A stretch of 64,000 nt of DNA from Rebecca billardiae RCC1528 (GCA_965240325.2 OZ251253.1:496001-560000), one strand, 5' to 3'; shown: positions 24,859 to 48,000, counted from the stretch's first letter. Notes: generated from the letters alone by a model not told the origin. Translations and numbers: made by a program.

Positions 24859-27800
24859 GCCGTCGCCGCCGCCGCCCGACGCGCCGCTCTCGGCGTGGCC
24901 GAGGTGGATCGCCTCGGCCTCCTCGGGCGAGACCAGCGCGTCGATGAAGTCCGCGTACCTGCAGCGCGCGGAGGTGCGGCGGGCGGGGCGGAGCGCGCGC
25001 GCGCGCGGGCACGCGGCGGGTCGGCAGTTGGCGCGGCTGCTCTCGAGAGCGCGGTTGGTGCGTGTGCAGCGGCGCAGCGCGGCCGGCTGGGTGGCCGACT
25101 GGCGCGGACGGCGGCCACGGCGAGCACGGCTGCCAGCTCGCGCGCAGTCGCAACGCCCGCCCCCCCCGTGCGTGTGCGCCCTGTGCCCGCGCCACGCTGC
25201 CCGGCGGCACGCGCCACGCCGCCCGCGCCACGCCGCCCGCGCCGCGCCGCGCCGCCCGGCGCCGCCCGCCCGCGCGTGCGCCGCACGTGAGGTGTCCCGC
25301 CGCCGTGATCGATCGGACGAAGAAGAGAATGTCCGCGGGCGAGACGTCGGGCACGTCGAGCCAGTCGAGCGCGCCCCACACCTCCGCGGGCGAGAGGATC
25401 CCGTTCTGGTCCGCGTCGAACTTGGTGAACGCATCTGTTGCGGCGCGCGCGAGCACGCACGCGCGCGCGCCACGCGCGCACGCACACGCGCGCGCCACGC
25501 GCGCGCGAGCGCGGCGGCGGCGCGGCGGCGGCGGTGGGACGACGTGGTGAGCCGCGGCGCGACGGGGGCGGCGTGGCGTGCGACGGCGGCGGGCGGCGCG
25601 GAGCGAGGGCGCGCGCGGCCGCGTCGGCAGCGCCGGCCGTGCGGCGCGCCGCGCGCACCGTGCAGCATGAGTCCCTTTGCCTTGATCGCCTCTCGCACGC
25701 GCACCGCCTGCGCGCGCTGCTTGAGCAAGCTCCACTCGTCCTCGAGGGTGAAGAGCTTGGCGAGCGGCGTCTGCTCCCAGCGCTTGGACATGCGGCGGCG
25801 GCACGCGAGCGTCATCGAGAACCAGATGCGCCGGCGCGCGGGCTCGGCGGGGATCGAGCGCAGCAGCAGGTTCAGCTCTGCTGGCGTGAAGTGCATCGAG
25901 CAGTCGATGAAGCGGCAGCAGTTGTGCGCCGCCGCCGCCTGGTAGTCGAGAGGCGGCCGCCAGCCCGCGCTCGCGTCGAGCACGGTGTCCTGCGCGCTCA
26001 CGCAGCGGAGGGCGACGGCGCAGTCCGCGCCGGGGACGAGCGCCTCGCCGCGCGCCTGGCGCAGGTGCAGCGCGCAGCGCAGCGTCTCCGCCTCCGCGAG
26101 CGAGAGCACCACGCGCTGCCGCCCCGCCTCCTCGCGCCGAAACTCGCCAGAGGTGAGCACGCGCGTCAGCTGCTCGAGCGTGAGCGCGCGCCCGCCGCGC
26201 CGCCCGCCGGCGGTGCCGGCGCTGCCGGCCGCGCGCGCGCCCGTCGCGGGCGGCGAGGCGGCGGCGGCGCCGTTGGCGGCGCGCGCGCCGCCCGCGCGCG
26301 CGCCGCGCCCGAACGGCCACCAGCCGCCGCCGCTGCCCGTCGAGCCGCCAGAGTCTGAGCCCGCGCCGCCGCCGCCGCCGCCGCCGTCGTCTGGCCCGCC
26401 GCCGCCCGCGCCGCCGCCGCCGCCGCCGCCGCCACCGCCGCCGGCGGAGCGCAGCAGCTGCTGCAGCTCGGGCTCGGAGAGCGCGATGTCCTCGGCGGAG
26501 CGAAGCGCCTCCACCACCTCCGCCACCTCAAACTGCCCCGAGCCGTCCACGTCAAGCAGTCGCAGCGCGTTCCGCAGCTTGGCCGCCTGGCGCTCGCTCA
26601 GCTCGGAGCGGCGCGGCGGCGCGGGCCGGAGCTGGGCGAGGGAGGGCACCCAGTCGAGCGCGCACACGACGTTCTTGAGCCGGCGCTCGCCCACCCAGTG
26701 CAGGTCGAAGTAGTTGCGCGCGATGTGCAGGTGCGCGGGGAACGGCAGCGCCGATCGCGAGTACAGCCGGAACTGCGAGGCCGGGTAGAAGACACCCGAG
26801 GAGAACGGCTCGGACGCGGACGCGAGCGCCGACAGCGGCCAGCGGCGCGGCTCCTCGCCTGCCGCGTGCGAGCGCGCGGGGCGCGGGGCGGCGGCGCGCG
26901 AGGGCGCGCGCGCGCGCGCGCGGGGCAACGGGCGGGCGCGTGTGGGCACACGCACGCGCCGCCTGTGCGCGCGCGCGCAGAGAGAGCAGGCCGCCCCGCG
27001 CCCTGTGCGCGCGCGGCCGGCCCTCGCTGCCCCGTCCCGTCGCGTGCGCGTGCGCGTGCGCGTGCGCGTGCGCCGCACGCACGGCGCCGCCCCGCCGCCC
27101 GCGTGCCGCGTGCATGCGCGTGTACGCGCGCGCGCGTGCGCGTGCGCGTGCGCCGCGCGCACGCACCGTCGCGCTGATACGCGAGGTCGGCGTAGCGCTC
27201 CATCTCGATCTCCTGCTCCTGCTCCTGGTCGCGCTCCTTCTCCGCCTCCTGCTCGCGCATCTGCTCCGTCTCGATGGCGGAGACGCCCTCCGAGGAGGCG
27301 ACGGACTGCGGGGGCGCGGGGCGGAGGAGGGAGGCGCGCGGCGTCGGCCGAGGGCAGCGCGCGCGCGGCGGCCACGCGCACGGGCACGCGCACGGGCACG
27401 CGCGCGGCGCGAGCGAGCGCGCGCGCTCGCTCGCGCGCGCGCGGCGCCGCGCTGCTCGGTGCTCGGCGCTCGCACCTTGAGAACATTCTCAACGACGGCC
27501 TCGTCCGCCTTGGTGCGGATGAAGTCGACGAAGCCGTCGCGCCGCTCGGCGAGCACCTCGACGTACTGCCGCGGCATCGGAAGTGTCTCGGAAACTTCCG
27601 TGTCCACGTCCTCGATGAAGACGTCGAGCGCTCGGCCGAGCGTGTCGCGCGTCTCGACCGAAGAGCGGCGGCCGCGCGCGCCGCCCGCGGCGGCGCCGCC
27701 GGAGGGCTCGCGCGAGGCGGGCCTGCTCCCGCCCGCGCCCGCGTGCGCCACGCGCGCGTTCACGGAGAGAGACAGCTCGCCCGTGCGGCGCGAGGCGGCG

Positions 27801-30800
27801 CCCTCCGCGCGCAGCAGCTCGAGCAGCTCCTGCGCGCTGAAGAGCACCGCAGAGGTCGCCTTGTGCAGCCCCGAGCGCTCGGCGCGCGGCACGAGCGCCT
27901 CCAGCCCCGCGAGGTCGCGCAGCCCGATCGCCAGGCGGAGCTCGTCCTCGATCGCCGCGCGCGCCTTGAGGTGCGCCCAAGGGAACTCGGTGAAATGCGG
28001 GTAAGGGTCGATGCCGAGCGACGACGCCTTGGCGGAGAGGCGCGCGCGCTTGAGCGCGAGCTGGCGGTCGAGGTCGCGCGTGCGCGCGGCGAGCCGTCGG
28101 TCGAGCATCTGCACCTTCTGCCGCTGCGGCTCGGACGCCTGCGCCGCCGTCGCCGCGTCGGTCATCGCCACCACCCAGCCCAGGAGCGCGCGCTCCGCCG
28201 CCGTCAGGATCACCGGGACGCCGCCGCCGTCGTCGGCCAGCTTGAGCGCGCGCGCGGAGAAGAGCCAGCCGTAGGTCTCGTCAGAGCCGCCGCCGGCCGC
28301 GCCCTCGTCCTCCTCCTCCGCGCGCCGCTCCGGCCGGATGCGCGCGGGCGGCACGCGCGGCTCAAAGTCGCCGTCGTCAAACTGCACGTCGTATAGCGTG
28401 GGCACGCCGGCCACCGGGGAGTCCACCACGCTGGCGATCTCGCCGGGGTACCACGTGCCCCAGCCCTGCCAGTTCGCCTCGACGCGCTCGCCGAGCCCGA
28501 ACGCGCCGCCCGTGCCGTCGTCGTCGTCCTCCTCCTCCTCCTCCTCGCCCTCCACTTCGCTGTCCTCGGCGCCGCGCCGCTCCCGCCGCACGCGCGCGGG
28601 CGGCACGGCGGCCTCAAAGTCGCCGTCGTCGAACTTCACGTCGTACAGCGGCGGCCCGCCCTCCGCGTCGGGCTCGGTCACCTTGGCGATCTCGCCGGGG
28701 TACCACGTGCCGCCGCCCTGCCAGTTCGCCTCGACGCGCGCGCCGACGGCGAGCGCGCCGCCGCCGCCCTCGCCCTCCGCGTCCAAGTCTGCGGCCGCGG
28801 CGGCGGCGGCGGCGGGCGCGCCCGCAGCGGCGGCGGCAGCGACCGCGGCCGCGGCGCGCGCCTCGGCCGCCTCGCTCGCGGCGGCGCGCGCCGCCTTGGC
28901 CTTCTCCCGCCGCTCCTTGGCCGCGTCCTTGAGCTCGCGCCGCTTGCGCTCGCGCTCGATCAGCGCGCCGCGCAGCGCGTCGCCGACGCTCGCCGCGGCA
29001 GGCAGCAGCTCGGGCGAGCGCAGCTGCGCGGTCACCTTGCGAAGCTGTCGCGGCTGCAGCGCCGCAGGGTCGAGCGCCGCGAGCGCGGTGGGCTCGGCGA
29101 GCGTGTCGAGCGCGCGCCGCGCCGCGGCCAGGTGCGCAAGCAACTTGAGAGCCTCCTCCTCGTCGTTGAGGCAGCGCTGCAGCGCGACAAGCATCGCTGC
29201 GCGCGGCACGGCGGTCTGGCCCCGCGCGCGCAGCCCCTTGCGAAGCGCGCGCAGTGCGAGGGGGTCGACGTCGGCGGGGAGGCCGTGCGCCTCGGCGGCG
29301 ATGGCGGCCTGTAGGTCCTCGTCCAGCTCGCGCTGCGCGGACGCCGCCTCCGCCTTCACCGCCTCGAGCTGCTTCTGCTTGCGCACGAGCTCGCCTGCGC
29401 GCACGGCGCGCGCGGTGGCGTGTGCGCGCGCGCGGTCTTCGGAGTGAGCGCGCGCGGTACGCACGCGCGGGGGCGGCGCGCCAAGACAGCAGGGCCCATC
29501 CGCGCCCAATCCTGACCCCCGCGTGCACGCACGCGCACATGCGCACGCGCACACGCGCGCGCACGCGCACGCGTACGCGCACGCGCACGCGCACGCGCAC
29601 GCGCACGCGCACGCGCACGCGCACGCACACGCGCGCGCGCGCGCGCGCACGCACGGCCGCACGCGCACCGTATGCCTCGAGGTACTCGCCGAGCGCCTTG
29701 GCCCACTGCGCCAGGTAGCGCACGCACGTGTACTGCTGGTACGCCGAGTTGGGCGTGCGCTGCGCCGTCACCATCGCGTGCTCGATGCCGTTCCCCAGCT
29801 GCACGAGCCGCGCCCACTCCTCAGGCCGGAGCCGCCCCGCCTCCGCGTCGTCCGCGAGCTCAGTGACGCGGGCGCAGAACGCGCCGAAGCCCTGCGCCGG
29901 CAGCTTCTCGTTCTGGAAGCCGAGCGCGCGCTTGACGCGCACGGTGAGCGGCTCCTTGGCCGCGCGCTCCTCCTTCTCCTTGGCAGACTCCTTCCCCGCC
30001 GCCGGGTCGGCCGCGTCGAGCGCCTTGAGCGTGAACGTGAACGCGTCTCGACACAGCTCGTCGCCTTCGAGCAGCGCGGGCGTGCGACACAGCAGCTCGA
30101 ATGCGCCCTGCTCGTACGAGTTGATGTACCCCGCGGTGGAGCGCACCTGCTCGAGCAGCGGCGCGACGATGCCCTTGGACGCGCGGATGTCCTTCTCGAG
30201 GATGGCGCCAAACTGCTTCATCCGCAGCAGCCGCGACTGCACCGCCTCGACCGAGGCGCCGGCGTCCTTGGCGCGCGCCGCGCCGCCGCCCTCGTCCTCG
30301 TCCTCGCCGTCGGGCTCGGGATCGTTGCCGTCGTCGCCCGAGGCCGCGGCCGCGTTGGCCGTCGCGGCGATCGCGACGACGGCGGGCAGGTCGTCGACGC
30401 CGTCGAGCCCGAGGAAGTCGCACGCGCACGAGCACACCGCGGCGAGCGTGGCCGAGGCGGACGTCTTGGCGGACGCGGCGCGCGCCTCATCCGCCGCCTC
30501 CGCATACGCGTGCAGTGCGAGCACCCAGCCGTGCAGCGCGCCCGCGGCCTGCCCGCCCTCGCGCGCGAGCGCCGCCTCGGCGGCGGCGGCGGCGGAGGCG
30601 TACCGCTGGAGCGCGCGCGCGGCGGACGGCGGGATCGCATCTCGCTCGAAGCGCGCGACGCGCGGCCCGAGCGCGGCGGGCTGCAGCGCCTTGGTGGCGA
30701 ACGTGGCCCAGTCCGGCTTGAGCGAGAAGAGCGAGGCGCACGTCTCGCCGAGCGCGCGCAGCTTCTCGCTCGGCCCCTTGGCGGCGGCGAGCGCGTCGAG

Positions 30801-33800
30801 CGCCTCGGGGCGCAGCCCGCGCACCGCCTCGACCGCGCCGCCGTACGCGGCCGCCGCCGCGTCGAGCGCCGCCTGCGTCTCGGGCGGCAAGACGGGGAGC
30901 GCGCCGAACGCGCCGATCTCGCGCGCGCCCGCCTCGCCCAGCGCCTCGAGCCCGCTGTTCGCGTCGGCGACGAGGTGGAGCACGGGCTTGGCACGCGCCT
31001 CCTCGCGCGCGAGCGCGCGCGCCTCCTTCGCCCGGACCTCCGAGTCGTGCGCCGAGTCCTTGAGCCGCGTCTCGTGGTGCTTGTCGGCCGCCTCCCACGC
31101 GGCGGCGAGCTGGATGAGGCGCGCGCCGTCGCGCGTGATCGTGCGCCCGTCCACGTCCAGCAGCACCACCGCCGGCGCCTCGGGCCGCGGCGGCACGTTG
31201 AACGTCTCGCGCAGCAGCTTGCGCCGCGCCGAGTGCGAGTACGGAATCGCCAGCCACGGCATCTCGGAGATCTCGTCGACGAACTGGTCGGCGGTGGACG
31301 CGGCGGAGACAAAGACGATTGCCAGCGCGTCCTCAAAGTGCGCGTGGCACGAGCGCAGCGCGTGCGTCAGCCCGATGCCCACCTGCGTGGCGAACGCGCC
31401 GCCGCCGCCCTCGTCGACCGCGCCGAAGAAGAGCGCGACCGTCTTGTCCTCGAGCACGCCGCGCCCGGTCGTGCCGAGCTTGGGCGAGATGAAGGCGTGG
31501 CCGAGCGAGTCGAGCACGTACGCGGACGCGTCGTCGTCGCGCACCTTGAAGTGCGTGTAACCGCCCATCAGCGCGCCAAACGCGTTCTTGCGCCACACGT
31601 TGGCGAGGTTCTGCGCCATCAGCTGGTCGTACTGCGTCGCCTCAGTGCGCATCGAGTTCACCACCAGCCACGCCGCCACGTCGTCGAGGCGGAGCGGCGC
31701 CGGCTCGCCGCCGAGCGCGGCGGAGGCGAGCGGGCCCGCGGCGGCCTCGGCGGGCGTGAGCGGTCGGCGCTGCACGCCCGCCTTGCGCAGCTGCCGGCAC
31801 ATCAGCCCCTGCACCTCGGGGATGAGCAGCAGCGACACCGTCTGCCCGCGGCCGATGCCGCGCATGCGGAACGCGCCCTGCGCGTAGTCGCGCCACACCA
31901 TATCCTTGCCCAGCGTGACGACCGCGCGCGCGTCCGCGTGCTGCGGGATGTCCATGCCCGTCGTGTGCACCTGCGCGCGCGCGGGGGCGGGCGGGCGGGC
32001 GCGCGCGCGCGCGGAGGAGCGGGGCGGTGAGGCATCGGCCGAGCGCGCGGGGCGGGCGCTCCGCTCGGCGCGCGCCGCGCCCGCCACCCCACCCACCTGG
32101 TCGAAGAATGTGAAGCGCTTCTGCGGCGAGATGCCGGACTGCGAGAGCTTGAGCACTCGGCCGGTGGAGCGTACGAGGATCATCTTCTGGTCGGCCTCGT
32201 CGAGAAAGACAACGCCCTCGCACCAGCGCGCGAACGCGGGCACGCGCAGCAGGAAGTGCGCGACCTGCGCGTTGTTCAGGCCGGTGATGAGCGCGCCCGT
32301 GTCGATCAGCGCGTGCACGCGGTGCGCGGACGTCGCGACGGCGGTGAGCAGCGACTCGACGGTCCAGCCGTGCGCCATCGCGGACCACGAGACGACGGCC
32401 GGGTCTGTGAGCACGGCGAGCATCTTGCCGTCCGAGCCCTCCTCGTACCCGCACCGGCCGAGCGCGAGCGGCAGCAGGTCGGACGGCGTGCCGGAGAAGC
32501 CGATGCGCCGTCCGAAGAGCATCTCCCCGCCTACCTCCTGCCCCGACGCGGAGATCTTGGTCACCTGGTGCTGCATGAAGGCGGGGAAGACAACCTCCTC
32601 GAGGTACCAGTGCACCGCGAGCGGCTGCGTGCGCAGCAGCCGGAACAGCTTGGACATCTGCTCGTCGTTCGACTGCTTGAGCAGCCAGAGCGGCACGACG
32701 ACACGCGCGTCGTCCATCGCGCTGCCCTGCGGCGGCGGCGGCCGCCGCCCGTCCGCGCCGTCGGCGGCGGCGGCGGCGGCGGCGGGGCGCGTCGAGCCCT
32801 TGACCATCCCGCCCGCCTGCTCAACCCAGTCCTCGAACATGATCGCCGACTTGCGCGTGGGGAACGGCCCCACCTCCTTCTCAAAGTTGGTGCGCACCAG
32901 GTTGATCACGTCGTCCTCGAAGTCGACGCGCCGCAGCCCCTCGTACCGGTACGCGAGCACGGTCAGCCCGATGATCACGTCGGGGTGCGCGAACTCGGAG
33001 GCGCGCGCGGGCACGTCCTTGCCCACGAACGGGATGGCGAGCTTGAAGCGCGAGCGCGGCATCATCGGCTCGGTCTTCTTGAGCCGGGCGTACTCCTCCT
33101 CCGTGAGCAGGCCGAACGTGACGCGCGAGATCTTCTGCAGGCAGTGCGGCAGCAGCGTGCCGAGCCACTCGGCGACGAGGTTGAGCATCTTGAACGCCTT
33201 GGGCGCGAGCACGCGCGCCGCGAGCGCGTGCAGCCGCCGCGTCGCGAGCTCGAGCTCGGCCGCCGACGGCGCGACGGGGCGCACCTGCCCGCCGCCGCCG
33301 CCGCCGCCGCCGGTGGCGGCGGCGCGCGCGCCGCTCGTCGTGAGCGGCGGGTCCGGCACGGCCTCGAGCGTCGCCTCGTCCCAGCGCGCGGAGCCGACGA
33401 GCGCAGAGGCGTCGCGCAGCACGTACGCCGACATCTGCTCCGCGTCCAGCCCCGAGATGTGCTGCGCCTCGAGCCACAGCTGCGCCCAGCGCGCCATCAC
33501 CGGCCGCATGCGCGCCGCGTACCACTCGTCGTTGAGCAGCACGAGGTGCGGCGACGCCTGCAGCGAGTGCGCGGCGTACCCCTCGTCGATCACGTCGCGC
33601 AGCTCGGCGAGGATGGCGTGCGCGCGCGTGGACTGCTGGAAGGGCACGCTCATCCGCCCGCCCGACTGCACGGCAAACACCGCGTCGAGCAGGTGGATCG
33701 CGAGCGTCCACCGCTCGGGCGAGAAGTCGAGCGGCAGCTTCGCGCCGATCGGGAAGTTGAGCTCCGAGCGCAGCGGGTGGAGCAGCAGGTCGACCTCGTC

Positions 33801-36800
33801 CATCACGAGCACGCCGCGGTCGACGAAGAGCTCGAGCACGCGCGCGAGCGCGCGCACGTCGCGCTCCATCGACGGGTGGTGCTTGCGCCGCGCGTCGCGC
33901 AGCACGTCGAGCTTCTCGAGCAGGCGCAGCTGCACGCTCTTGACGGACGTCGACGTGCACAGCACGACGCCGCGGTGCGCCACCGCCGAGCGCAGCTTGT
34001 CCACCAGCTCCCACGACGCCTCGGCCGAGCGGTCGAAGGAGAGGGTGAAGACGCGCTTGCGGATGATCGACGAGAAGGCCGAGCGCAGCGTCGCGCGCGT
34101 CTGCTCGAGCAGCGCCTGCGGCATCATCTGCACGACGAGCGAGTGGCCGTCGCCGAGCATGAGCGACAGGATCGGCGAGATCACCGTCGTCTTGCCCCCG
34201 CCCATCAGCATCTGCTTGACGAGCGGCTCGCCGCGGCGCACGCGCGCGGCGAACTCGGCGATCAGCTCGACCTGCGCCTTGCGCAGCAGCAGGTTGTGAA
34301 TGAACTCGAAGAGCAGCAGCCGCGGGTCGAAGACGAGCCCGCCCGCGGCGGCGGCGGCGGCGGCGGCGGCGCTCGGCGCGCCGTTCGCGCCGTGCGCGGG
34401 CGCGGCCGCCGCGGCCGCGGAGGAGGAGGGCGGCAGCGGCGGCGCGCGCTCGACGTAGTGCCGCCCGGTGCGCAACAGGTCCGCCAGCGCCTCGGCGCGC
34501 AGAGAGATGCTCGACGCGAGCTCGGCGGGCACCGCCGCCGCGGCCGCGGACGAGTCGGCGCGCGGCGGCGCGCGCGCCGCGGCGCGCGCGCCCTCGGCCG
34601 CCGCGCCAAGCGTGCGCGCGAGCCCGTCTGCCTCGGCGATGCAGCGGTTGGTCTGGCCGATGCGCGTGGCGTGGCACACCGTCGCCACGACGAGGTCGAA
34701 GAGCGCCGACGCACGCTCCGCGCTCACGAACGGGTTGAGCCGCATCAGGTCGTCCTCGCCGCGCGTGGAGATGAGCAGGCAGAAGAGGAAGTCGAGCGAG
34801 GCGTGCGCCTCCGCGCCCGCGCTCTGCCGCAGCGCAAACGCGATGCGCCGTCCGAGCTCGGCCATCTGCGCGGCCTCGGCGCCGCCGTCCGCGCCGCCGC
34901 CGCCGCCGCCGGCGCCGCCCGCCGGCGCCGCGCCCGCCGCCGCGGCCGCGCTCAGGTCGATCTTGTTCGCCACCTCCTCGATGCGAGGCAGCGCGCGCGA
35001 GACGTACGCGGCGTCCTTGGCGCGCCGCTCGCGCAGCTGCGCGAGCAGCGCGGACACGGCTGAGCCGGACTCCTCGAGCGCGGCGGCGGCGTGCGCGGGC
35101 TCGGACGGCCACGCGCGCGGCACGAGGGTGAGGCGGTGCGGCGCCGCGTCGTTCTGCTGCCGCGCGTACTGAGCCATGTCCGCCGACATGCGCTCGTGCA
35201 TGTCGCGCGCCACCTGCGGCACAGCGGCGCGGCGCGGCGCGCGAGCGGCGGGCGCGGCGCGGCGGCGGAAGCGCTCGGCCGGCGGGCGCGCGCGCGCGCG
35301 CGCGGGAAGGAGGGGGCGGCGGCGGCGCGGCGGCGCGGCGGCGCGGCGCGCGCGCTCGGCCGGCGCGCGGCGGTCGGCCCACCTTGGAGCCTGCGTGCGG
35401 GTGGCGCATCACGTCGAACGAGAGCTCGGCCGAGACGGCGCCGAGGCCGAGCTGCGCGCGCGGCACGCGCCGCACGTACGCGTCGAGGCCGAGCACGGCG
35501 AGCGGCTCGGAGGCGAAGGCGGCGCACTCGTCGGCGCTGGTGGAGAGGGCGACGTCCCCGAGCAACGCTCCGTCGACCGGCCGCAGTGGCCGCCGCGTGC
35601 AGCCGTAGTCCGTGACGAACGGGATGATCCACCGCCGGTTCGCCTGGCCGCTCAGGTCGAAGGGGCGCGCGGCGGGCACGTGCGCGTGCGCGATGCCGCC
35701 GCCCACGCCGTGCACGCCCTCGGCCGAGGGCGGCGCGAGGCCGGCCCACCAGTCCTGCACGGCGGCGAGCTCCTCAGCGCACTGCTTGTCCACCGCCGCG
35801 GTCAGCTCCTCCACGCCGCCGCCGCCCGCGCCGCCGCCGAAGCCGTCAAAGCCCGTGCGCGAGGAGAAGCCGCCGCCGCCGCCAAACCCGCCCCACGCGC
35901 CGCCGCGGCTCCCAAACATGCGCTCGCGCGTGAGCGCGTCCGAGCGGCGCTGCAGCATGCGCCGGCGCACCGCGGTGCGCAGCCCGGAGCCTTTGGGCTG
36001 CGAGAGCGCGCTCAGCTCGTGCAGCACGCCGCGCAGCAGCCCGCCGAGCGGCGCCTCCGCCCAGTCGCCGCCGGGCGCCACGCCGACGAAGATCTCGCGC
36101 CGGTTGTGCTTGCGTGTGTCTTCGAACGGCGGCAGGAACGGCCCGAGCAGCGGCTTGCGCGCGAGCGTGTGCAGCACCGAGTTGAGCAGCGACGGCTCAG
36201 ACGCGTCCGGGAAGAGCGGCAGCAGCATCGTGCCGAGCGACGCGGAGCAGTTGTCGTCGACCAGCCGCGCCTCGGTGCCGCCGCTCAGCAGCGAGTAGAG
36301 CAGCAGGAAGCCGCCGCCCTCGACCGTGTACGCCGGCGTGGGGCGCACCGTGTTGAGCGCGCCCACCAGGTTGACGAGCTGCTCCATCATGAGCGAGCGC
36401 TGGTGCGTGTACCTCATCTGCAGCTCCTCGAGGTACTTGAGCAGCTTGGTCGCGTCGAACTGGCGGAGCGTGTCGTCCCAGTGGCTGATCCACCGGTTGG
36501 GCGGCGGGCGCGCGGGCACGTCCACCGCGCACGCGCCGAGCCCGGCCGCCTCCGCGCGCAGCTGCGCGCGCCGGTTCTTGCACAGCAGCACGAGGTGCAC
36601 GGGCAGACGCTGCTCCTCGCGCCGAGGGTCTGCCGCGTCGACCACGCACCGGTTGAGCAGCGCGAGCTCCTCCTCCGCCGAGAGCCGGCAGTCCGCGGAG
36701 ACGAGCCCCAGCTTGTCCACGTAGTGCGCCATCTCGAGCGTGAGCAGCCACGGCATCCGCACGGGCGCGTCCAGCATCACAAACGAGATCTTGAGCCGGC

Positions 36801-42706: not shown

Positions 42707-45015
42707 GCGCGTGCCGCGCGCGGCGCGCGCGCACGGGGGAAGGGGCGGAGGCGGCGACGCGTGAGCGCGGGCGGCGCGGACGCGCTCTACGGGCGCGCGG
42801 CCCCGCCCGCGTGCCGCGCGCGTGCCCCGCGACCACGCGCGCGCGCGCGCGCGCGCGTCCGCGCGCGAGGCGCGCGTGGCGGGCAGGCCGGGCGCGAGAT
42901 TGCAATCTCGCGCGCGGCGTGCGCGAGATTGCAATCTCGCGCGCGCTGCGTGCGCGCCCCACGCACCGTCTCGGCGTAGTAGGGCTTGGTGTACTCGGAC
43001 GGGAGCGCGAGCGGCGGGAAGCGGTACGCGGGGGGCATCTCGCCGCGCCGCAGCTTCGGCCGCGTGAGCAGCTGCATGCCGTCGTACCTGCGCGCGCGCG
43101 GGCGGGGGCGGAGCGCACCTCAGCGCGCGCTCGGCGCGCGGCGGCGGCGCGGCGGCAGCGGGCGCGGCTCGGCGCGCGGCCGCGCGGCGCCGCACCCCTT
43201 GACGATGAAGCGCTTGAGGTCGGGCTTCCACTCCCAGAGCAGCTCGGCGTGGCGCTGCGTGTACGCCGGCTCCTGCGTCTGCGGCAAGTAGTCCGTCTGC
43301 GGGTTGAGGAACAGCTTGAGGTAGTAACCGACGTCGCGGTACACGGACCATTCCGGAAAGTTCTTGCCCACGAGCGCGCGGTCGTCCGACACGTAGAGCG
43401 GGGTGATCGCCTTGCCGAGCGGGAAGGCGAGGCAGCGGCAGAGGCCCTCGAGGAAGCGCGAGACGCCCGACTCGAGCTTGTCGCTCTTGTCCCAGTTGAA
43501 GATCGCCGTCGTCTCACCCGCGATCCCCTCGAAGTAGTCGAGCGCTCGCGAGCGCGCAATGTTGAGCTCTGGCGAGTGGCACACGACGGTGGCGGCCTGC
43601 TTGGCGAGGTTGCCCGGCGTGTACGCGTAGCCGCGGCCGGGGTTGGCGAGCTCGGGCGGGCCCGCGCCGCCGCCCATCAGGTGCAGCGACACCGCGCTCG
43701 GCGCGTCCACCGCCGCCTTGCGGATCACCGCGTCCGCCACCGCCGCGATGCAGAGCGCCACCACCATCCGCACGCCATCGATCGGGCGCGTGTGGTCCTG
43801 CGAAAAGACGGACGCGGCGAAGTGCTCGAGCACGCGGCGGAGCAGCGTGAGGCACTCGAGCTGCGTCTCGTAGTCCACGTCTGCGCCGCGCGGGGGAGGC
43901 GGGGGCGCACGCGCGTGAGTGCCGGGCGCGGAGGCGGCGGGGCTTTGCAGTGCGCAGCAGCCGAGCCGAGCGACGCGCGCGTCCACGCGGCCGCGCGCAC
44001 CCTCCTGCCACACGCACGCCTTGCGCACGGCGGGCGGCGCGTTGGGCGGCTCGGGCATCGGCAGCAGCGAGGTGAAGGTGTGCTGCGCCAGCGCCACCAC
44101 CAGGTACGCCGTGTTCTTCACCGCGTGGCTCTGCACCGCGATGAGCGTGCACAGCTTGTCCGCGTGCCGGATGGCAGCGACCGCCTCGACGATGGAGCGC
44201 ACGCGCGCCGGCTGCTGCAGCAGGTCGATGGGCACGTAGGTGGGGAGCAGCGTGTGCGCGCCCGCGTCGACCGGGCCGCGGCGGAGCAGCCGGTCCGCCA
44301 GCGCGTGCAGCTGCGGCGTCGGCGGCGGCGGCGGCGTCGACCACGGGAAGCGCATCGGGTGGCGCATCAGCACGCGCACGCCGTCCGCCGAGATCAGCCT
44401 CCGAGATCGCCCCTCCAATAGCACGATCGTCGGGATCGACTCGACGCGGAAGAGCTCGCCGAGCTCGGCGCGCGCGCGCGCGTTGGAGAAGGGGACGGAG
44501 AGCCACGGCATCGTGCCGAAGTACGCCGCGTGCTCCGCCTCGTCGTGGTCGCTCGAGACGAGCACCACCTCGAACGCGTGGCCCGCGCGCCGAAGTTTCG
44601 CGTAAACTTCCTTGAGCGCGGGCGAGAGAGAGCGGCAGGGGCCGCACCACGACGCGCCAAAGTAGAGCGCGACGACGCCGTGCGCGGCGAGGGTACGCTC
44701 GGCGAAAACGTACTGCAGCGCGCTCCCCGCGCCGCCGCGCAGCGCGCCGCCCTCGCCGCCCGCCGCCTCGTCCGCCACGCCGCCGCCGCCGGCCGCCGCC
44801 TCGGCCGCCGCGGCCGCGGCCGCGACGGCGGCGACGCTCGCCGCGCCGCCGCCGTCCAGCGCCTTGGCGTCGACGGGCGGCGCGCGGCGCACGCGCGGCA
44901 GGCACTTCTCGTCGTCGCAGAGCACGTCGAGCTGGCCCACGCGCAGCGGGCCCGCCGCCTCGCCGCCCTCCGCCGCGCCCGCGCCCGCCGCGCCGCCGGC
45001 CGCGCCGCCGGCCGC

Positions 45016-45046
<31 letters not shown>

Positions 45047-48000
45047 TCGGCCGCGGCCTCGGCATTGCGCTCGAGCACGTCGCCTGGGCGCGCCGAGGGC
45101 GGGCGGGCGCAGCGCGGGGCGCGGGTGGGGCGCGTGAGGCGCGCGCGCGCGCGCATCGCGCCGCCCGCGCGCCGCGCCGACCGAGCGCGCGCGGCACGCC
45201 GGGGCCCGCGGGCTCGCGGCGCGACGCGCTCGCGGCGTGGCGCGGCGCTGCGCGGCGCGGCGCGGCGCGACGCGGCGCGGCGCGGCGCGGCGCCGCACCG
45301 AGCATGCGCGTCCACGAGAGGAGCTCGAGCTCGCGCTCGGCCTCGTTGAGCACGAGCGGCGGCGGAGCCGCGCTCGAGTCCCCCTCGCCCGTCGGCAGGC
45401 CCGCCATCTGCCCGCGCACCTGCAGCAACGAAACGTGCAAAGCCACCAGCTGCGGCAGAGTCAGAAGCTCGGCCTCGGAAGGCGCGCCGCCCGCGCCGCC
45501 GCCGTCGATGGCGGTGTCGGCGTCGGTGGCGGCGAGCGCGGAGGAGGAGGCGGCGACGGGGGGCTCGCCGCGCGCGCGCGCGAGCGCGGCCGCCTTCGCC
45601 TCCTCGCGCGCCACCTGGCCCAGCGCCGCGGGAGGCGCGCAGGGGGCCGCGCGCGCGTCAGCCGCGCGCGGCGGCGGGGCTGGCCGCGCGCACGCGGCGG
45701 CGAGGGCCGCCACCAGGCGCGGCGCGCACACACGCGGCACGCACGCACGCACCTGCACTTTCTGGATGTACGTGACCGACGGCGGGCGCAGCGCGGGCGC
45801 GCCCGCCCCCTGCAGCACCACCCCCGGCTGGAAGCCGCCGCCCCTCTGCCCGCTCGACCCGGGCTCGGGCGTAACCGCCATCGTCTCACGTAACGTCCGC
45901 AGCCCAGCCTCAGAGCCGCGCGACGGCGCGGGCGCGAGCTTGGCGGCGTGGTGGGCGACCTGGCGGAGCGCGATCTCGAGCACGCGCCGCTCCGCGCCCG
46001 ACGCGGCCGTGACGAAGTGCAGGTCGTGCGCCGCCATCGTGAGCATCTCGAGCCGCAGCTGAGGGGCGGGGGGGAGAGCACGAGGGCGCGCGCGAGCGGC
46101 GCGCGGCGCCGCGGCGCGCGCGCGGCGCGAGCGGCGCGGAGGGCGGCGGCGGTGAGCGCAACCGGCCGCGGCGGCGGTTGAAGCATGGCGGTGCCGCCGC
46201 GCGGGCGGCGGCGGCGGGCGTGCACGCGGCGCGTGTGCGTAGCAGGGCGGCGGCTGCCTCCGCCCTCGACGCGCGCGCGCGCCCGTGCGCGCGCGCTGCG
46301 CGCGCGCGCCCGCGTCCGTGGCGCGCGCGCGCGCACCATCAGCATCACTCGCTTGCGCGCCGCGCGCTCGACGCCGCGCGCGCCGAGCAGGTAGCGGAAG
46401 GCGTGCGTGATCGTGCGGTAGTGCGCCGTGCTCGACTTCTGCGCGGACATCGCCGGCGGCACCGCCCCCTCGTCCGGCGCGCCCCCCTTCTCCGCCGCGG
46501 CCGCGCGCTGCTCGCGCAGCGCGTCCGCGGTCGGCCGCCCCACGAGGAAGGAAAGTAGAATCTCATACAGCAGCCGCGTGGGCGGGTAGTGGAACTGGCT
46601 CGGCTTGCCCGCGGTCACGGCGCAGTACCACGCGAGGCCCCAGAACGCCTCGTCGCACGCCTGGGGGCGCAGGCGGGCGCGCGCGGGCGGCGCGCGCGCG
46701 CGGGCGTCACGGCAGGCGCGCGCGGCGCGTGCGGCGCGGCGCGCGCGGTACGCGGCGTCGGCGCGTGTGCGTGCGCCGCGCGCGCCGCGCGCGCCTTTGC
46801 CCAGGGCACCCGCTCCAGCACGCAGCACGTCTGCCAGCGCAGCTTGGGCGGGCTCGCGCGCGGCGCGTGGAAGCCGAGCAGCGCGGGGTCGGTCGAGACC
46901 ACCACGAACCGACACAGGGTCGGGTCCTCGCGGTCGCGCTCGACGACGTAGAGCACTGGCAGCCCGCTGATGGCTGCCGGGAGCAGTCGGGACTCGCCCG
47001 GCTTGCACCGGCGCAGCTGGGTGAGCAGCACCTGCAGGTACATCCGCGGCTGGTTGTTGCTCACCGCCTGCACGTACCGGTGCCCTGCGCGCGGCGCACG
47101 CGCGCGCGCGCACACCGAGGGGGGGGGGGGGGGGCAGGCGCGCGTTGGCCTGGGTGGCGCGCGCCGAGCGCAGCCGAGCGCAGCGCTCGCGCGGGGGCGG
47201 GCAGAGGCGGGCGGCGCAGGCCGGGGCGAGGCGGCCGGCGGCGGCGCGCGCGAGGCGCGTGGCGCAGCGCAGCCCGCCCGCGCGGAGGGCCCGCCGCGCG
47301 GATCGCAGCCCCCGCCCCAAACCCCAGCAGCCGCGCGCGCCCGCGGCCGCACGCACCGAGCTTCTTGGCGTCGTCGAGAGACAGCAGCAGCGCGTTGCAC
47401 GCCTGCCACACGCCGTGCGAGAGGCCCGCGCCGAAGAGCGAGCCGAGCGCGCGGTTGGTGAGCATGCGCTGCAGCGCGAGCGCGAAGAACTCGAGCGAGG
47501 TGTGCGCCGAGCCCGAGCCCTCGAGGCCGGTCCCCTGCACGCAATGGTCCGCGAACGCTGCCACGAACGTCGGGTGAAGCCATGCGGGCGGAGGCTTGCC
47601 GTACAGCGGCTGGAGCGACATCTGCGCGCGCTGCGCCGCGCGCGCCTCCTCCGCCTCGTCGGCGAACTCGTCGGTGTTGCGGATCTTGAGCAGCTCGCGC
47701 CGCACGCGCCCCTCGTCCTCCCACCGCACCGTGCGCAGCGCCACGTACTTGACGCACACGCCGCACGCCTCGCGCTCGCCCGACTCGCCGGGGAGCAGCG
47801 CGCACAGCTTCGGGTCGATGGCGAACGCGGCGTTGATGGCCTGCCGCTCCTTCTCGCGCTTCGACTTGGCCTCCGCGTCCGCGTCGTCCGAGCGCTCGTT
47901 GCCGCCGTCGCCCTCCTTCTTCTTGCCCTGTGCGCGGCGCGGCGCGAGCACGCGCACGCGCGCAGGCGCGCGCGCGCGGCCGCGCGGTCGGCGCGTGTGC

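Follow-up and report, generated by a model that had tools for sequence, protein, structure and literature searches.

Tandem Homologues of the Dynein Stalk Tip in a Giant DUF3638/DUF3645 NTPase of Rebecca billardiae, as Indicated by Sequence Profiles and Predicted Folds

Introduction

The microtubule-binding domain (MTBD) in which the dynein stalk ends is, to our knowledge, treated as exclusive to dynein heavy chains, and we know of no function of its fold other than tubulin binding. A 64,000-nucleotide stretch of the Rebecca billardiae RCC1528 genome (GCA_965240325.2 OZ251253.1:496001-560000; hereafter, the window) raises the question of whether this domain can live outside dynein, and to what end. 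In the initial annotation of the window, up to three MTBD-like units were read from a region at 28-31 kb, in a non-dynein protein, and it was suggested that they could tether the ATPase to microtubules. We call these units, in the order of translation, units 1, 2 and 3. Our literature searches returned no paper on an MTBD outside dynein, nor any function for the DUF3638/DUF3645 proteins, to which the host of the three units proved to belong.

The comparisons described below identify units 1 and 2, by their sequence, as descendants of the dynein stalk tip. What is new is the setting: a known domain occurs in a conserved, tandem and motor-less context, and the protein that carries it is not a dynein. 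The stalk tip thus appears as a portable module, reused by evolution in tandem and on truncated stalks in an unrelated family of giant nucleoside triphosphatases (NTPases).

Results and Discussion

Unit 1 Has the Sequence and the Predicted Fold of a Dynein Stalk Tip

The three peptides on which the initial annotation was built are all present on the minus strand where it had placed them: HGWVLALHAYAE at 30533-30498 and VRYLAQWAKALGEY at 29723-29682, both in the frame of the open reading frame (ORF) 28614-35222, and ERALLGWVVAMTDA at 28195-28154, in the frame of ORF 26552-29668. The first of them belongs to unit 1, as does the peptide VRGLRPEALD, which starts at 30824 (minus strand) in the same frame. 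The coordinates of the main features are collected in Table 1.

As a single sequence, unit 1 gave weak matches in a phmmer search of the PDB (E 0.036-0.56), and dynein heavy chains accounted for 5 of the 10 matches listed, over their stalk-tip/MTBD region. In an exhaustive phmmer search of 1.84 billion representative proteins, 22 proteins were found at E <= 1e-3. Most of these were orthologues with a thioredoxin-like domain in front of the unit, and true MT-domain proteins were among them, namely P0007, which matches the Pfam MT domain (PF12777) at E 3e-31, and P0016 and P0018, both with canonical dynein MTBD sequence. A profile of 16 orthologues, from which every dynein-like sequence had been excluded (profile A2), was far more telling. 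Its best 60 matches in the PDB were all dynein stalk/MTBD entries, headed by 8glv_Fm (4.5e-18), DNAH6 (6e-18) and the MTBD of Chlamydomonas DHC9 (2rr7, 9e-18). Searched against the R. billardiae genome, it recovered its own locus (3e-68) and two paralogues (1e-45 and 5e-37); next in rank were dynein heavy chains, 11 in number, and a single short frame of the MT type on contig C12. Moreover, hhalign aligned unit 1 with eight dynein stalks of the same genome at 98.3% probability (E 1.3e-13) over 237 columns, which comprise coiled-coil helix 1 (CC1), the MTBD and the first part of coiled-coil helix 2 (CC2). Unit 1 is close to dynein, and its best matches are among the single-headed inner-arm axonemal dyneins of the DNAH6/DHC9/DNAH1 type. 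Its identity to proteins of other organisms is 25-31%, with all fold-core residues intact in the window copy, and its core has a net charge of +2 with 12 basic residues, which is within the range of the dynein MTBDs of the same genome.

The predicted structure pointed in the same direction. The AlphaFold model of unit 1, made with A2, had a predicted local distance difference test (pLDDT) score of 87.9 and contained the six-helix MTBD bundle (helices H1 to H6). The best 42 matches of this model in a Foldseek search of the PDB were all dynein stalks or MTBDs. In VIA structural alignments, 11 dynein MTBD/stalk entries scored Z 11.2-16.1, and the first unrelated fold scored Z 5.5. Among the former were the DNAH7 MTBD (6rza_X, Z 16.1, 3.3 Å, 146/163 residues), the yeast MTBD (6kjo, Z 13.9, 2.9 Å, 136/141) and the mouse MTBD on microtubules (6rzb_C, Z 13.2, 146/149). 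In the ESM Atlas, the two best clusters for unit 1 were PF12777. The initial annotation, which had likened unit 1 to the dynein stalk and MTBD, proposed that a lack of profile or structural matches to dynein MTBDs would speak against that likeness; clear matches were obtained with both kinds of comparison, hhalign and Foldseek included. The homology and fold of unit 1 are established, at the level of sequence and model.

Unit 1 shares with the dynein stalk tip (PF12777) a six-helix bundle, into which the chain comes by the CC1 helix and from which it leaves by H6, which passes into a return helix. Signature positions are shared as well: the L..L preceding H1, the Pro of the PP motif, VEA (H1), D-[WF] (H2), D..IP, and L..WV.A (H6). 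The structural fits extend over nearly whole MTBD structures (Z 13-16 at 2.4-3.7 Å). The dyneins that match best are DHC9 (2rr7), DNAH6, DNAH1 (8i3j) and DNAH7 (6rza), together with the cytoplasmic dynein-1 MTBD (3err, 6rzb). In dynein, in contrast, the MTBD is placed between AAA4 and AAA5 of a six-AAA+ ring, whereas here it lies within a DUF3638/DUF3645 NTPase, occurs in two, perhaps three, tandem copies, and has a stalk of only tens of residues.

The coiled coil that had been thought to flank unit 1 is present on one side only. A long CC1-like helical stretch leads into the MTBD, but after H6 a short return helix gives way to a conserved Cys-rich helix, in the place that CC2 has in dynein. 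The family consensus of this helix is CSxAMxAACECxCDLxGL, and the window copy reads ...VCSCACDFLGLDG. Rather than a long antiparallel CC1/CC2 stalk with ~100 residues per strand, unit 1 has a CC1-like part of ~90 residues and a return helix of ~30 residues before the Cys-rich helix. Unit 1 has a thioredoxin-like domain that lacks CxxC in front of it, and the Cys-rich helix, which is part of the unit, may be a metal or redox site.

Unit 2 Is a Diverged MTBD-Type Module

The second end-motif of the initial annotation, at about 29690, had also been taken for MTBD-like, and this is well supported. The best PDB match of the unit 2 profile (A3) was the dynein gamma heavy chain, over the whole MTBD (E 9.6e-4), and the next three matches were dyneins as well, on H6 and CC2. 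By hhalign, unit 2 aligned with the dyneins of its own genome over 200 columns at 93.1% probability (E 4.6e-8), or at 88% once the paralogues were added. As the window copy is split by an intron, the fold was taken from the contiguous orthologue P0002 (residues 535-930, pLDDT 81), and it is in this orthologue that the six-helix bundle of unit 2 is predicted, with coiled-coil helices of ~40 and ~50 residues. Residues 1-210 of the model matched 3err_A (Z 14.0), DNAH1 (Z 12.8), DNAH7 (Z 12.1) and mouse 6rzb_C (Z 11.9, 2.6 Å, 147/149), and unrelated folds began at Z 8.4. Unit 2 is kept in orthologues. That it is a diverged but real MTBD-type module is well supported by its profile and by the orthologue model.

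One further match of the P0002 model (P0002:535-744) was to chain 7jtk_C, Chlamydomonas radial spoke 1 (residues 434-610), at Z 12.9 and 3.8 Å over 174 residues, on par with the dynein MTBDs. It could be another non-dynein fold of the MTBD kind or a mere helical hairpin.

Unit 3 Resembles Dynein in Its Last Helix

Homology to the stalk-tip/MTBD profile extends over units 1 and 2; in unit 3 (~29290-28037, minus strand), only the last helix resembles dynein. By hhalign, this helix alone aligned with dynein, over 46-48 columns, with a probability of 16-33% and E 4e-4 to 1.6e-3. Of the three MTBD-like units allowed for by the initial annotation, two could therefore be upheld, and the third is reduced to its final helix, the body being devoid of dynein matches and interrupted by Tudor insertions.

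The orthologues of unit 3 keep four ordered elements. A UBA/CUE-like stretch comes first, then a segment that is conserved and an acidic insert that varies, and the last is a helix of the H6-to-CC2 kind with a conserved Pro. Pfam searches with unit 3 of five orthologues and of the window found only a CUE match at E 0.028 in P0006, and an ESM Atlas feature search with an orthologue unit 3 gave PF12777 clusters at 0.81, a score that the tool itself counts as no more than a lead. By its sequence, unit 3 is a possible MTBD remnant rather than a recognizable MTBD.

The UBA/CUE-like stretch lies at ~29130-29230 (minus strand), with the consensus ...RWALKRTxGNExxAxALL..., and recurs in P0006:590-760 and P0002:735-925; its assignment is tentative. 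The insert, which directly precedes the H6-like helix, differs between copies: the window gene has two Tudor domains there, the paralogue on contig C25 and P0015 have one each, and P0002 and the paralogue on contig C3 have none, the latter having an acidic low-complexity insert. As the Tudor content varies among copies, the position of the insert in unit 3 is an insertion hot spot.

The unit 1 and unit 2 profiles hardly recognize each other, and when unit 2 or unit 3 was aligned with unit 1 by hhalign, only the H6 helix matched. The units are therefore not recent internal duplicates, an origin that this match, limited to H6, rules out.

The Host Is a Giant Non-Dynein P-Loop Protein

The window is eukaryotic sequence with a GC content of 72-80% around the 28-31 kb region. 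At ~78% GC, long open frames arise by chance in all six frames, so that the length of an ORF does not speak for a gene here. On the minus strand, the stretch at 28.0-31.1 kb belongs to a single giant gene of several exons, which encodes a DUF3638/DUF3645 P-loop NTPase. Both Pfam families (PF12340 and PF12359) score above their gathering cut-offs, and the Walker A motif is present. A sequence search of the PDB with the ATPase core gave no match. In the exons scanned by Pfam, at 27.4-38.5 kb, no dynein motor domain was detected; the domains found were DUF3638, DUF3645, Thioredoxin_8 and Tudor_5, and the locus is not among the ~20 dynein heavy-chain loci of the genome. The host is a giant P-loop protein and, as the initial annotation had it, not a dynein.

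The exons were analysed separately, and naturally contiguous orthologues or paralogues were used for the parts that span introns. The intron at 29668-29395 connects the frame of ORF 28614-35222 with that of ORF 26552-29668, and a GT donor after 27476 closes the exon carrying unit 3. The join across 29668-29395 and the one across 32096-31971 are both backed by the paralogue on contig C3, which is uninterrupted there. The downstream exons encode EF-hands, a LamG-like domain and ankyrin repeats, and the same set is found in the orthologue P0001. The thioredoxin-like domain ahead of unit 1 is also present in the orthologues P0002, P0003, P0006 and P0011.

The cassette of the thioredoxin-like domain and units 1, 2 and 3 recurs in two paralogues of the same genome, at C3:3212642 (6761-aa open frame) and C25:967150 (5391-aa open frame). 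They have the same order of NTPase core, thioredoxin-like domain, units 1, 2 and 3, EF-hands, LamG and ankyrin parts, with 39-46% amino-acid identity to the window gene over units 1-2. In contrast to the window gene with its GT-AG introns, they are intron-less over this region. The cassette was also found in ~15 proteins, taken from metagenome and transcriptome assemblies, of other eukaryotes that are uncultured or little studied. Among them, P0002 starts within the conserved region that follows closely on DUF3645 and has the same order of parts, and the cassette is therefore carried by the same host family elsewhere. A word-index protein search for further orthologues of units 2 and 3 added one protein, P0023.

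The extreme base composition invites the question of whether the MTBD-like units are a chance resemblance or an annotation artefact, such as an Ala-rich helical linker in GC-rich DNA, or else a decaying pseudogene copy. Chance frames are everywhere at ~78% GC. In addition, when three single segments of the window were searched with Pfam MT (PF12777), none gave a match even at E 10, and the ratio of nonsynonymous to synonymous substitution rates (dN/dS) against the two paralogues was ~0.9-1.0, with no sign of constraint. The Pfam miss reflects the limited sensitivity of single-sequence searches, as the profiles showed, and not absence of the domain. The dN/dS value probably carries no information, given that the synonymous sites are saturated and are constrained by the extreme GC content at third codon positions (GC3), and that the identity is only 39-46%. 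On the other hand, the profiles reached E 1e-13 to 1e-18 against dynein MTBDs only, the model is confident (Z 11-16 versus 5.5 for unrelated folds), the module has been kept at 25-31% identity in other organisms with its fold-core residues intact, and the canonical GT-AG introns are supported by an intron-less paralogue. We give chance or decay hardly any credence, and for units 1 and 2 a chance resemblance is effectively refuted.

Table 1. Features of the window gene and further matches to the MT domain in the R. billardiae genome (window coordinates unless a contig is given).
Feature	Position	Strand	Basis
Unit 1, whole	30363-31100	-	Homologue of dynein stalk tip and MTBD, by sequence and model
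Unit 1, predicted CC1-like helices leading into the MTBD	30819-31097	-	AlphaFold helices 2-53, 55-66, 73-94; hhalign alignment to dynein CC1; VIA alignment to stalks 8i3j, 5ayh, 3wuq over model residues 1-232
Unit 1, predicted six-helix MTBD core (H1-H6)	30501-30818	-	Orthologue profile, hhalign, VIA, Foldseek, ESM Atlas
Unit 1, short post-H6 helix and Cys-rich helix in place of CC2	30363-30500	-	A2 consensus; model helices 183-213, 217-229
Unit 2, CC1-like helix and diverged MTBD core, H6 motif at 29682-29723	29670-30260	-	Profile A3, hhalign, orthologue model
Unit 2, CC2-like helix, possibly also leading helix of unit 3	29291-29394	-	Orthologues align here with dynein CC2; one long helix (154-206) in the orthologue model
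Unit 3, body: UBA/CUE-like stretch, LRxP...VRKVRxxLR segment, Ala-rich linker	28754-29290	-	Orthologue alignment; no MTBD match
Tudor domain 1 inside unit 3	28610-28753	-	Pfam Tudor_5, best over residues 219-266; E 1.6e-13 (whole exon)
Tudor domain 2 inside unit 3	28331-28501	-	Second Tudor_5 stretch and Agenet match, residues 306-359
Unit 3, tail helix resembling dynein H6/CC2; after the motif (28154-28195) comes EPQRQKV..., compare VEPKR... in dynein	28037-28207	-	hhalign
Thioredoxin-like domain of the nucleoredoxin type, lacking CxxC, immediately upstream of unit 1	31143-31445	-	Pfam PF13905 (Thioredoxin_8), E 4.8e-7
DUF3638 P-loop NTPase core	33675-34325	-	Pfam PF12340, E 8.8e-34, 117.2 bits (cut-off 31)
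Walker A LMGGGKTT of the DUF3638 core	34185-34208	-	Read directly; intact
DUF3645 motif	32961-33059	-	Pfam PF12359, E 3e-14, 52.5 bits (cut-off 25)
GT-AG intron of 126 nt, in frame, separating FFDQ from VHTTGMD	31971-32096	-	DNA reading; C3 paralogue contiguous across the join
GT-AG intron, 274 nt, phase 1, between unit 2 H6 and CC2-like helix	29395-29668	-	DNA reading; C3 paralogue contiguous across the join
Further MT match	C12:1357355-1357909		Pfam MT
Further MT match	C32:44107-44625		Pfam MT
Further MT match	C7:108536-108937		Pfam MT
Further MT match	C12:1635967-1636212		Pfam MT
Further MT match	C32:94232-94735		Pfam MT

Proposed Role: A Passive Microtubule Anchor

A counterpart to the units exists among engineered proteins. 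In the seryl-tRNA-synthetase-MTBD chimeras (SRS-MTBD; 3err, 3j1t, 6rzb), a dynein MTBD is mounted on a short non-dynein antiparallel coiled coil, as is predicted here, and 3err_A is among the top structural matches of both units (Z 16.1 for unit 1 and 14.0 for unit 2). The chimeras are artificial and their registry was chosen, whereas the present arrangement is natural and known from sequence and model. It is established that an MTBD taken by itself and set on a short foreign coiled coil can bind microtubules, and that the helix registry determines how strongly it does so (SRS-MTBD; 3err, 6rzb; PMC6629372).

We consider it likeliest, with a probability of roughly 60%, that the two modules of each chain act as passive microtubule anchors, which would bind constitutively and with enhanced avidity. 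This judgement is based on the binding of SRS-MTBD, on the short stalks that lack an AAA+ ring, on the presence of two heads and on the dynein-like charge. The coiled coils are short overall, with a CC1 of ~40-90 residues and a return helix of at most ~40. As they are short, as unit 1 returns through a Cys-rich helix, and as there is no link to an AAA+ ring, the helix registry that sets affinity in dynein is probably fixed, which would argue against nucleotide-driven stepping. Anchoring of this kind would bring the ATPase to the microtubules of the cytoplasm or the flagella, and with it the EF-hand, Tudor, LamG and ankyrin parts of the protein. In dynein, the MTBD binds at the intradimer interface of alpha/beta-tubulin. 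A single docking run of the unit 1 core (30465-30863, minus strand) with the alpha- and beta-tubulin of the same organism gave a score of 0.00, which counts neither way.

Apart from the Pfam miss and the dN/dS ratio discussed above, several observations weigh against this role. The family-conserved residues of unit 1 (A89, L96, P110, E119, D130, P157, L164, L189 and W192) are fold-core positions common with dynein and are not demonstrably tubulin-facing, and the basic residue at the start of H1, an R in most family members, is displaced in the window copy. The swap of the return helix of unit 1 for a family-specific Cys-rich helix may mean that another role has been acquired. Unit 3 adds little to the case: every profile test of its globular part failed, the unit 3 profile found no dynein in the PDB and only a weak match to the Ddi1 UBA (E 0.32), and an ESM Atlas search with the front part of the window unit 3 returned nothing.

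Alternatively, the MTBD fold may have been retained but repurposed, without tubulin binding, as a protein-protein surface or as a rigid helical spacer in a giant protein. It might, for example, dock on other parts of the same chain, or on a partner recruited via the UBA/CUE-like, Tudor or Cys-rich elements. The confinement of conservation to the fold core and the conserved Cys-rich helix in place of CC2 fit such a change, as does the divergence of unit 2, which has gone so far that the profiles of units 1 and 2 scarcely match. The presence of MT-type modules on several unrelated protein types in the genome could mark a generic adaptor, and a radial-spoke protein (7jtk_C) equals the dynein MTBDs as a match of the unit 2 model. 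However, tubulin binding is the sole function that we know for the fold, a search with unit 1 as a single sequence reaches real dyneins among 1.84 billion proteins, the charge of its core is dynein-like, and tandem copies would suit avidity binding to a lattice. We regard repurposing, in either form, as the main rival of anchoring, unlikely though by no means negligible.

The presence of an NTPase core with an intact Walker A on the same chain brings up another possibility, that binding is actively controlled. The NTPase, EF-hand or redox elements might shift the registry of the coiled coils and so switch the affinity of the MTBDs, making the protein a regulated or processive mechanoenzyme. 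The cassette does lie within the conserved C-terminal region of the ATPase and not at a free end, EF-hands and thioredoxin-like domains flank the units, and two MTBDs per chain could in principle alternate. Yet hundreds of residues and the globular thioredoxin-like domain separate the NTPase core from the units, and with short stalks, and a unit 1 that has no proper CC2, it is hard to see how a registry shift would be passed on. Active coupling is improbable on these grounds. Very doubtful, too, is the broader idea that the DUF3638/DUF3645 giants form an unrecognised class of microtubule mechanoenzymes, each a non-AAA+ NTPase with a captured stalk tip and two heads. In such giants, the two heads would serve to attach to microtubules, to move along them or to remodel them, under the control of nucleotide, Ca2+ or redox state, and we put this forward as speculation.

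For the DUF3638/DUF3645 proteins, the presence of these modules offers the first concrete functional handle, namely microtubules or flagella. If the units do bind microtubules, haptophyte-type algae would have a family of giants associated with microtubules, in which an ATPase is joined to Ca2+-binding and redox-like parts and to parts like readers of methyl-lysine or ubiquitin. Moreover, the units are natural constructs of an MTBD on a short coiled coil, and could reveal what sets registry and affinity where a motor ring is lacking.

Other MT-Type Proteins and Observations on the Gene

Two proteins recovered in our searches resemble the window protein in having two tandem MT-type units and no dynein motor in the recovered sequence: P0007, a Diphylleia rotans transcript of 386 aa, and P0017, of 357 aa, from a Logan assembly. 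Both differ from it in being fragments, from which no thioredoxin, Cys-rich helix or DUF3638 part was recovered, and the units of P0007 are much nearer to canonical dynein than those of the window, as its Pfam MT match indicates.

The paralogue on contig C3 (C3:3211500-3219500) is the closest one to the window gene. It is intron-less across at least 2,649 codons, and the window gene has several introns at the same places, which suggests that one copy has gained introns or else that the paralogue arose by retro-copying. The 274-nt intron consists mostly of (GT)n/(GC)n-type microsatellites, as does the region at 26.5-27.4 kb (minus strand), and these translate as long VR/AC repeats. In an upstream exon (~44600-44900, minus strand, within ORF 43120-45315), there is a second thioredoxin/nucleoredoxin-like domain, with WCGPC intact.

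Below the ~20 dynein heavy chains of the genome, five further Pfam MT matches were ranked (E 2e-8 to 7e-4; Table 1). Their open frames are of 245 aa, 159 aa, 1560 aa, 2139 aa and 8149 aa, some of them short or unusual, and those at C12:1357355 and C12:1635967 are far too short for a dynein. It seems that proteins of several types carry MT-type modules in this genome.

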